Below, piece after piece: positions 22,330-24,281 of a stretch of DNA of 64,000 nt. The stretch is from the NCBI GenBank assembly GCA_965644315.1, contig CBFFRQ010000078.1, positions 310,001 through 374,000 on the forward strand, read 5' to 3'. Below the pieces are notes generated by a model. The model was not told the origin of the DNA. It saw only the letters and a list, made by a program, of their open reading frames with translations, and did no database searches. Numbering within the stretch: position 1 is the stretch's first letter; the number at the start of each line of letters is the position of its first letter. The position numbers were made by a program, and so were the translations under genes. Origin of the DNA: Caecitellus pseudoparvulus. Lineage: Eukaryota; Protista; Bigyra: Bicosoecida.

Positions 22330-24281
22330 TTACTCGTTGCTCACCAATGCCGCGCTGTGCAGCTTGCCAGCTGTCACACCCACAACCTTGGGGCTGCCGG
22401 CCATGCCCGCGGCAGTGGCCGCAGCGCTGATGGCATGAACCTCCACCGGGTCCAGCCGGGCCGCTGCCACACTCTCCAGGCTGTCGCCGCGCCCCAGCTG
22501 CCCCTCCCTGCCACGGCCGGTCACGAACACGCGGTTGTCATCAGTCAGGAACACCGTGTGTCCCCCCGCTGCTGCGTCCACAACCTTCAAGCCCAGCAGG
22601 CCGTCCACTGACCGTGGTGTGCCGGCGTTGGTGCGGTCGCCTGTGCCCAGTTGGCCGTCCTTGTTGGCACCCCACGCAAACACTGTTCCGTCGTTTGCAA
22701 GGGCCAGCGAGTGGTACTCCCCAGCAATCACCTGCGCAAGGAAAAACCGTTGGAGTGCGTGGGAGCACAGCAACCTGAAAAAAACGACTGAACACGCATG
22801 GGGACCCTGAGCACACAGCACGGACAAGGTTCAGATCATCTAGTAGCTGAGCGATCCTCAGTGCAGCATGAAGCTGACTCGGACTTCAACGAGAAATAGC
22901 GATCATCAACACCCCGCCCCAACTCACACACACACACACACACACGAGCACACGGCACGGACAAGGTTCAGATCATCTAGTAGCTGAGCGATCCTCAGTG
23001 CAGCATGAAGCTGACTCGGACTTCAACGAGAAATAGCGATCATCAACACCCCGCCCCAACTCACACACACACACACACACGAGCACACGGCACGGCCAAG
23101 GTTCAGATCATCTAGTAGCTGAGCGATCCTCAGTGCAGCATGAAGCTGACTCGGACTTCAACGAGAAAAAGCGATCATCAACACCCCGCCCCAACACACA
23201 CACACACACACACACACACGAGCATACAACACAGCCACAAAAGCACCCATTGTACACCAGCGAAACTCACCTTGACGATGGGCTTGCCGTCGAAGCCAGA
23301 CACTTGGACGGGCTCACGCTCTGCGCGGTTCTTGAAGCCCACGCCACACTGGCCGTACTCGTCTGAGCCAAAGGCAAAAACTTTGCCGTCGGCGAGCAGC
23401 ACCACGGTGTGGTCGCTGCCGGCTGACACATGGATGACGGGGCTGCGGAAGCCTTGCACCAGTGTGGGCTCCGGGCAGTCCTTTCGGGAGCCATGGCCCA
23501 GCGCGCCGTAGTGCCCGCCACCCCACGTGTACAGCTCGCCCTCCCGCGTCAAGGCGACTGAGTGGCGGCGCCCCGCTGCCACCTGCACGATGTCCTTCCC
23601 CTGCAGGGCCCCGCCGACCTTGCCTGGGACTCCAGGGGAGGCGGCACCTGCCCTGCCCACGGGGCTGGCCCGGCCCTGGGCGCCCCAAGACCACACCGTG
23701 CCAGTGGTGTCCAGCGCCAGCATGTGCATGCCGCCGACGGCGATGGAGGCCACGCGGCAGTCGGCAGGCAGGCCAGACACCCAGCGAGGGGAGTCTTGGT
23801 TGGGGGCGTCGCCACCGTCGCCGTGACCCAGCATGTTGTGCTTGCCACAGCCGAAGGTAAAGACGCTGCCGTCTTCGCTGATGGTGGCAGTGGCAGAGCT
23901 GGAGAGGGCGGCAAGGTGCAGTGTGTGCCAGTGCTGGGTGGCGTATTGCGGGAGCGAAGGACGCACCTTGCTGCTCCGCTAGTGACGTTGAAGATGGTGT
24001 GCTTCGACAAGGCATCAATCTTCGTGGGCTTGAAGATGTCCTTCTCGTGCCCCAAGCCCAGTTGGCCTGTGGGGAGGCGGGGAAGGCGCGGCGGTTCCAG
24101 GCAGGGAAGGGTTCAAATTCCGACCACCACAGCGCCGCCGCCGCCACGCACCGTACTGGTTGCTGCCCCAAGAAAAAACCTCACTGTCTGCCGAGACAGT
24201 CGTGCCCACAAGCCAGGCAGCCGAAGCAGCTGCCGTGGCGGGCGCAGCAGCCGCAGCGAGAGCTCGCACGGCGCTGTACAT
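22330..24281 (-). CDS. RCC1-repeat (beta-propeller) protein with a possible mitochondrial presequence; host gene of the intronic snoRNA array
   Basis: Repeated RCC1 motifs (VFSWGSNQYG, VAAGRRHSVALTREGELYTWGGGHYGALGHG, VSAGSDHTVVL, IAGEYHSLALANDGTVFAWGANKDGQLGTG). The N-terminus MYSAVRALAAAAA is Ala-rich with no acidic residues. Short introns plus one 539-nt intron (23270-22732, GTGAG...GCAG). Confidence 0.9.
22826..22915 (-). ncRNA. Box C/D snoRNA, copy 1 (dual guide, 18S and 28S rRNA)
   Basis: Minus strand reads GGGGT-GT-TGATGA (C) ... ATTTCTCGTTGAAG-T-CCGA (D') - CAGC/GCTG hairpin - CTGAGGA (C') ... CAGCTACTAGATG-AT-CTGA (D)-ACCTT. The terminal stem GGGGU/ACCUU with a 3-nt bulge fits a k-turn. 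Guides complement the conserved SSU CUUCAACGAGGAAU and LSU CAUCUAGUAGCUG. It lies in an intron on the host sense strand. Confidence 0.88.
22963..23052 (-). ncRNA. Box C/D snoRNA, copy 2
   Basis: Identical to copy 1 across boxes, guides and terminal stem. Confidence 0.88.
23098..23187 (-). ncRNA. Box C/D snoRNA, copy 3
   Basis: As copy 1 except one A>T change at the distal end of the 18S guide (GCTTTTTCTCG versus GCTATTTCTCG). Confidence 0.86.

Follow-up and report, generated by a model that had tools for sequence, protein, structure and literature searches.

A probable box C/D snoRNA encoded by three tandem units in a spliced intron of a marine protist

In a 64,000-nucleotide stretch of genomic DNA from Caecitellus pseudoparvulus (contig CBFFRQ010000078.1, positions 310,001 to 374,000; hereafter the window), the third intron of a gene for a four-exon RCC1-repeat protein contains three tandem repeats that are probably duplicated, functional genes for a single box C/D small nucleolar RNA (snoRNA) of approximately 90-98 nt, as judged from the sequence of the units, the organism's own ribosomal RNA (rRNA) and a related protist. 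The organism is a marine, GC-rich (~65%) protist with a 30.6 Mb genome in which a fibrillarin gene is present. The snoRNA belongs to no described Rfam family and was previously uncatalogued: Rfam 15 gave no match in the window at gathering thresholds, and at E<=10 the region 22700-23300 matched no snoRNA family, with only a spurious long non-coding RNA match on a UG tract. A literature search by guide sequence returned primers only.

The repeat units and the intron that carries them

Tandem Repeats Finder delimited 3.0 copies of a 135-137 bp period with 97% matches at positions 22809-23217, and alignment resolved these into three tandem units of 135-138 bp that are pairwise 97-100% alike, with a mean column identity of 98%. 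This agrees with the three repeats of 135-139 bp given in a preliminary description of this DNA, and every box which that description had placed was found at its position in the three units (Table 1). On the sense strand of the host gene, the module order of each unit is GGGGU, box C (UGAUGA), a 20-nt guide, box D′ (CCGA), a CAGC-loop-GCUG hairpin, box C′ (UGAGGA), a second 20-nt guide, box D (CUGA) and ACCUU. Box C and box D stand at fixed positions in all three units, with a U occupying the R position of RUGAUGA. In both the minimum-free-energy and the centroid folds, C and D are brought together by the 5-bp terminal stem GGGGU/ACCUU; this stem had been described at that length, and is corrected here in that RNAfold extends it in units 2 and 3 to 9 bp (GGGCGGGGU/ACCUUGUCC, including three G-U pairs). 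The internal 4-bp CAGC/GCUG hairpin, which juxtaposes D′ and C′, was also recovered by RNAfold. Units 2 and 3 are identical, and unit 1 differs from them by an A to U change at the 5′ end of the D′ guide duplex and by a G/U base in the 3′ stem extension.

Both strands of the window were scanned with a crude filter that combined box C with box D at 50-115 nt, a terminal stem no shorter than 4 bp and a guide forming at least 10 Watson-Crick pairs across the position five nucleotides from box D or D′ (D+5). Only the three units passed, each with both guides, and none passed in 20 shuffled windows; a genome-wide search for further copies likewise returned these three units only. At the level of sequence, the predicted RNA has every feature expected of a box C/D methylation guide.

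Table 1 Features of the host gene and of the predicted snoRNA array (positions in the window)
Feature	Positions	Strand	Details
Host gene, four-exon RCC1-repeat protein	22330-24281	minus	ATG 24281; exon ends 24152, 23967, 23271; stop codon 22332-22330
Host intron 3, carrier of the array	22732-23270	minus	539 nt, GT...AG; from the sequence and loose ends of RNA contigs at 23271/22731
5′ part of the intron	23188-23270	minus	First (UG)12 tract, 23218-23195; GCTC motif that recurs at each unit joint
Predicted snoRNA unit 1	23098-23187	minus	90 nt; box C 23180-23175; D′ guide 23174-23155 (UUUUU variant); D′ CCGA 23154-23151; hairpin 23148-23136; C′ UGAGGA 23132-23127; D guide 23126-23107; D CUGA 23106-23103
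Unit 1 terminal stem arms	23187-23183 and 23102-23098	minus	
Spacer 1	23053-23097	minus	45 nt; GGCCGUGCCGUGUGCUCG, (UG)9, AGUUGGGGC
Predicted snoRNA unit 2	22963-23052	minus	90 nt, same as unit 3; box C 23045-23040; D′ 23019-23016; C′ 22997-22992; D 22971-22968
Spacer 2	22916-22962	minus	47 nt; like spacer 1, except (UG)10
Predicted snoRNA unit 3	22826-22915	minus	90 nt; box C 22908-22903; D′ 22882-22879; C′ 22860-22855; D 22834-22831
3′ part of the intron	22732-22825	minus	94 nt; U-rich tracts and 3′ splice site

The intron begins with GUGAGU and ends with GCGCAG (minus strand, 23270 to 22732) and splits an RCC1 repeat whose reading frame is continuous across the exons (...GKPIVK/VIAGEYHSLAL...), the downstream exon opening with VIAGEYHSLALANDGTVFAWGANKDGQLG; RCC1 Pfam domains were found on the separately searched exon products of the host gene. 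RNA contigs from two metatranscriptome studies halt at the exon borders (X15 at 23267 and X16 at 22733), and their unaligned ends are the exact sequence of the opposite exon. The joint of intron 1 of the host gene is visible in RNA contigs in the same way. Intron 3 is removed by splicing, and the snoRNA units lie on its sense strand; the 539-nt intron with its 23270/22732 splice, as first proposed, is borne out by its GT-AG ends and by the two metatranscriptomes, and the region is not exonic. The host gene carries a predicted intronic snoRNA cluster, in which three sense-strand units share a single spliceosomal intron whose removal is seen in RNA. The gene's remaining introns measure 85 and 68 nt, and the array intron exceeds them 6-8 fold. 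The N-terminus of the host protein (24281-24152) is Ala/Arg-rich and resembles an organelle presequence (MYSAVRALAAAAAPATAAASAAWLVG...), and the host may be an RCC1L/WBSCR16-like mitochondrial protein.

Guides and predicted rRNA targets

Targets were scored against the ribosomal DNA (rDNA) of the genome itself, comprising a small-subunit (SSU) rRNA of 1697 nt, the 5.8S rRNA and a large-subunit (LSU) rRNA of 3173 nt. The D′ guide of units 2 and 3 forms a 14-bp duplex (one G-U) with SSU 1475-1488, placing C1478 opposite guide position 5, and that of unit 1 pairs over 13 bp with SSU 1475-1487. The D guide forms 13 Watson-Crick pairs and a terminal G-U pair with LSU 836-849, with U838 at position 5. 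The target of each guide occurs once in the organism's own rDNA, and only 2 of 1000 shuffled D guides matched the observed pairing. Both the 14-bp SSU and the 13-bp LSU pairings that had been proposed from conserved rRNA segments therefore hold in the organism's own rRNA, as does the D+5 register of the two proposed targets (18S CUU[C]AACG and 28S CA[U]CUAG), which fall on SSU C1478 and LSU U838. Of the checks suggested at the outset, Infernal/Rfam returned no family, and comparison of the guides with the organism's own 18S and 28S rRNA was positive.

Two side observations concern the guide and its target. An A/U polymorphism affects the D′ guide duplex at its 5′ end (22897; also 23169 versus 23034), with the U allele (13-bp duplex) in unit 1, in both metagenome scaffolds of the species and in the metagenome contig described below, and the A allele (14 bp) in units 2 and 3. 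At just 1697 nt (136-1832 of the retrieved rDNA, contig C81), the 18S rRNA is short, with much reduced variable regions and a GC content far below that of the genome; contig C81 contains at least five resolved rDNA repeats of 8.45 kb.

The predicted sites were placed relative to mapped modifications of other eukaryotes. LSU U838 corresponds to Arabidopsis U939, as identified by the context A938-U939-C940-U941-A942-G943-U944-A945 in a per-nucleotide RiboMeth-seq table, in which U939 is not methylated, A945 is methylated by snoR12/Z44/snoR30 and U944 is an unused snoR38 site (PMC8053127). The yeast Um898 site (snR40) was considered as the LSU target and rejected, as the Arabidopsis table puts the target at U939, 32 nt 3′ of the U898 equivalent; the offset from the snR72 and U80 sites suggests a position near yeast U930. 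SSU C1478 corresponds approximately to Arabidopsis C1574 and yeast C1568, by the offset from the equivalent positions Cm1645/Cm1639/Cm1703, and the Arabidopsis 18S list has only Um1554 and Am1579 in the interval around C1574 (PMC8583080). Both predicted sites are unmodified in Arabidopsis, and each lies 4-6 nt from sites used by other lineages. The nucleotide identities of yeast Gm1572 and m7G1575 and of Arabidopsis Am1579 are consistent with the SSU register. The preliminary description had counted neither position as a standard yeast or human site. In Arabidopsis the equivalents are unmethylated or unlisted, and in yeast and human neither equivalent is known to be modified.

The unmethylated state of both equivalents in Arabidopsis, the one species compared, would also fit a real C/D ribonucleoprotein whose main role is other than rRNA methylation, acting as a chaperone of pre-rRNA folding or in cis on the splicing or expression of its RCC1-like host, whose intron the array expands to 6-8 times the length of its neighbours. 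Such a role is extremely unlikely, as the exact D+5 register and duplexes of 13-14 bp are typical of methylation guides, the data point to no other target, and lineage-specific rRNA methylation sites are common.

In the proposed mechanism, RNA polymerase II would transcribe the host pre-mRNA, and Snu13, Nop56, Nop58 and fibrillarin would assemble on the C/D and C′/D′ (kink-turn) motifs of each unit. Following release of the units from the intron, the D′ guide of the resulting particle would pair with 18S rRNA and the D guide with 25S rRNA, and fibrillarin would 2′-O-methylate the nucleotide opposite the fifth guide position, predicted as SSU C1478 and LSU U838.

Conservation, copy number and processing of the array

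Three relatives with DNA context were retrieved using the product of host exon 3. In the nearest (L009; host protein 70% identical over exon 3) the intron is present and contains a snoRNA unit, on a contig that ends after C′. Its intron has a (UG)~11 tract followed directly by GUGAUGA and then by an identical D′ guide, CCGA, the hairpin and UGAGGA. Compared with the array, 36 of 36 positions are identical from box C to the 5′ hairpin arm, against 19 of 30 in the exon flank and 17 of 51 (33%) in the 5′ intron flank; the hairpin loop has changed at all five positions, but the stem and C′ are retained, a pattern that a functional RNA would be expected to show between the two species. In L011 (host protein 59%, exon 4) the intron is present at 105 nt without a snoRNA unit, and in L008 (54%, exon 3) both intron and unit are absent and synteny is conserved. 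The element was therefore apparently present in this intron only in the nearer lineage, having either entered or been retained there. The intron site itself varies among the relatives, with no intron at L008:4560-4620, one of 105 nt at L011:283-389 and one with the snoRNA at L009:1119-1237; the synteny kept in L008 comprises a WD40/CFAP251-like gene upstream and a FYVE-ABC1-beta-lactamase gene downstream.

Several observations weigh against an array of functional genes. Boxes D′ (CCGA) and C′ (UGAGGA) are off consensus, with the GA dinucleotides kept in both, and 11 of 1000 shuffled D′ guides paired as well with some rRNA site when G-U pairs were allowed. A scan of JGI metagenomes for both guides in one RNA gave 0 matches, and a scan for box C, D′ guide and D′ together gave four, all by chance, which sit in GC-rich or AT-rich coding sequence without any other C/D feature. 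No small RNA was seen and no RNA contig lies on the units in the contig-level RNA runs, some of which are poly(A) libraries. The unit was found in one relative only (L009), on a contig that ends before box D, and two more distant relatives (L011 and L008) lack it at the site. Fold prediction shows no spacer structure that would mark a cleavage site, and two scaffolds of the same species, one with a single unit (L010) and one broken at a unit joint (L013), could reflect either collapse of the repeat or a real allele.

The missing Rfam match, the fact that no mature RNA was seen and the absence of the element from the more distant relatives would suit a non-functional satellite or a decaying array of snoRNA pseudogenes that is degraded along with the intron. 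This is very unlikely, given that boxes, guides and stems are intact in three of three copies, that the functional core is 100% conserved in L009 where the surrounding intron is at 33%, and that both guides are in perfect register with invariant rRNA segments.

The number of copies bears on a further alternative, namely a single functional intronic snoRNA gene, with the three copies due to misassembly or to a polymorphism found only in the sequenced strain. Two short-read metagenome scaffolds of the same species are in its favour: L010 has one unit, with two flanking GCTC motifs, and L013, which ends in a single unit, starts exactly at a unit joint. Collapse of the repeat would, however, produce both of these forms, the start of L013 being the break that a repeat is expected to induce in such an assembly, and the three units differ from each other in the A/U of the guide, the G/U of the 3′ stem extension and the tract lengths (UG)12, (UG)9 and (UG)10, differences that an artefact would not create. 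An independent, unrelated marine metagenome (X5, record 9) contains a contig of 156 nt (22818-22975) that crosses the spacer from the end of unit 2 into unit 3, at a depth of 27.7 compared to 13.8-15.8 in the flanks; the joint and the depth therefore indicate at least two tandem copies in nature. The genome assembly furthermore resolves five 8.45-kb rDNA repeats, which suggests long reads. Because the units differ from each other and the assembly resolves the rDNA repeats, three copies are provisionally accepted in this strain, and the single-gene alternative is considered unlikely.

The one-copy form also indicates how three functional genes may have arisen. In L010 the unit has ...GUAUGCUC-G(UG)n... 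on one side and ...CGUGUGCUC-AGGG on the other, and each joint of the array reads GUGUGCUC-G(UG)n; the breakpoints are therefore placed in a short GCTC direct repeat beside the UG tract, and not inside it. One intronic copy could have given rise to the array via unequal exchange or slippage between the two short GCTC-containing direct repeats that flank it. The earlier proposal that the UG spacers were the slippage points is not upheld, since the joint lies at the GCTC microhomology beside the TG tract. The array most likely serves only to increase dosage.

Since three units share one intron, exonucleolytic trimming of the debranched lariat would be insufficient for their maturation, as exonucleases alone are unable to part three units in one precursor. 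An endonuclease would have to cut the single-stranded U/G-rich spacers to separate the units, after which 5′-3′ and 3′-5′ exonucleases would trim each unit to its terminal stem. No RNase III-type stem was found in the spacers: the predicted fold of the complete intron is no more stable than that of shuffled sequence (z = +2.35), the centroid structure leaves the spacers open, and spacer 1 is predicted to be mostly unpaired, stem extensions excepted. In the genome, the RNase III domain has a single weak match (C67:331147-331395, within an open frame of 1816 codons), and neither PF00636 nor PF14622 pointed to an obvious Rnt1-like gene. As the spacers are open and the only RNase III-domain locus is a weak match, a yeast-like Rnt1 stem-loop route is not indicated, and we would speculate that a single-strand cut in the U/G-rich spacers is likelier.

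The UG tracts themselves are rare. The (TG)n tracts at 22925-22944, 23062-23079 and 23195-23218 are the sole dinucleotide tracts of at least seven repeats in the window, approximately 18 tracts of (TG)>=8 occur in the genome, three of them within this array, and (TG)7 followed by UGAUGA within 20 nt occurs in the genome only here. Because of this rarity, and because (UG)~11 precedes box C in L009 as well, the tract upstream of each unit was considered as a conserved cis-element of snoRNA biogenesis, as opposed to a passive microsatellite, which could serve as the site of a UG-binding protein, as the single-strand endonuclease site that separates the units, or as an aid to splicing of the enlarged intron. 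This reading is doubtful, because none of the 15 other (TG)>=8 tracts fetched from the genome adjoins a C/D unit and a second snoRNA cluster in the genome (described below) is without a tract. The same 15 tracts rule out (UG)n as a general flag for snoRNA genes, and the processing signal that the preliminary description had proposed in the UG repeats finds no genome-wide support. Two of the (TG)8 tracts lie 1.8 kb apart (C89:127083-127898 and 128855-129670) with near-identical flanks, which indicates that several hundred bases or more are locally duplicated there.

Relation to known snoRNA clusters and guides

With the array, a C/D snoRNA that is well supported and was not catalogued before is described for a group of marine protists in which scarcely any snoRNAs are known. 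Two lineage-specific rRNA methylation sites are predicted for it, one in the head of the 40S subunit beside the m7G/P-site segment and the other in a conserved segment of 25S domain II. The arrangement was already known, and it is the snoRNA itself that is new. The understanding of how snoRNAs work is unchanged. Annotation should treat tandem repeats of this kind, when they lie in long introns, as genes and not as satellites.

A second intronic cluster in the same genome is partly confirmed from its sequence. At C62:460441-463650 (~1735-2290), an intron that starts a few bases after the Rpn3/PSMD3 stop codon contains C/D-like units in two tandem pairs. Their box C is non-canonical (UGACGA, UGAAGA/UGAGGA), and their putative guides would form 11-12 bp with LSU G845 (7 nt from U838), LSU U2572 and SSU C544; the cluster has no (TG)n tract. 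Given this second cluster, intronic clusters formed by tandem duplication seem to be routine in this genome, and, taken together, the two suggest that intronic polycistronic clusters of tandem duplicates exist beyond the plant/green-algal lineage and Drosophila.

With regard to the guides, Arabidopsis snoR12/Z44/snoR30 pair with the same conserved 25S segment (AUCUAGUAGCUGG), but methylate A945, six nt 3′ of the equivalent (U939) of the predicted site, and have no detectable sequence relationship to the snoRNA described here (no Rfam match at E<=10). The same 18S head segment (CUUCAACGAGGAAU), beside m7G1575, is targeted by yeast snR57 (Gm1572) and Arabidopsis snoR8 (Am1579), whereas the site predicted here is 4-5 nt further 5′.

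As in vertebrates, the units are encoded in sense orientation within an intron of a gene transcribed by RNA polymerase II. The 94 nt between the 3′ end of unit 3 and the 3′ splice site is near the distance that Hirose and Steitz (2001) reportedly found optimal for splicing-coupled assembly in mammals. Vertebrate introns, in contrast, contain one snoRNA each, compared to three here, and the host in this case is unrelated to ribosome biogenesis. Most clusters in Chlamydomonas are reportedly local tandem duplicates (Chen et al. 2008, Genetics).

The clusters of trypanosomatids and Euglena resemble the array in having head-to-tail repeats of snoRNA genes in one precursor (PMC2780460, PMC7671301), but are not intronic and usually mix C/D and H/ACA genes in each repeat unit. 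The preliminary description had regarded several snoRNAs in one intron as unusual, and this does not hold outside animals and yeast: intronic snoRNA gene clusters have been described in rice and Drosophila (PMC2780460), Ostreococcus tauri has two (clusters 3 and 5), and the polycistronic clusters of Chlamydomonas and Euglena usually yield multiple snoRNA isoforms (PMC7671301), quite apart from the second cluster in the present genome. The array shares with the clusters of rice, Drosophila, Chlamydomonas reinhardtii and Ostreococcus tauri the presence of several sense-strand snoRNA genes per intron of a protein gene, expressed from a polycistronic precursor, and, as in the array, the members of those clusters are often isoforms that stem from local tandem duplication. 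It differs from them in that the host is a marine, probably heterotrophic, stramenopile-like protist (the nearest named relatives of its PGK are those of oomycetes and labyrinthulids, at ~70% identity), and in that near-identical copies of one snoRNA, not mixed genes, are separated here by (UG)9-12 spacers.

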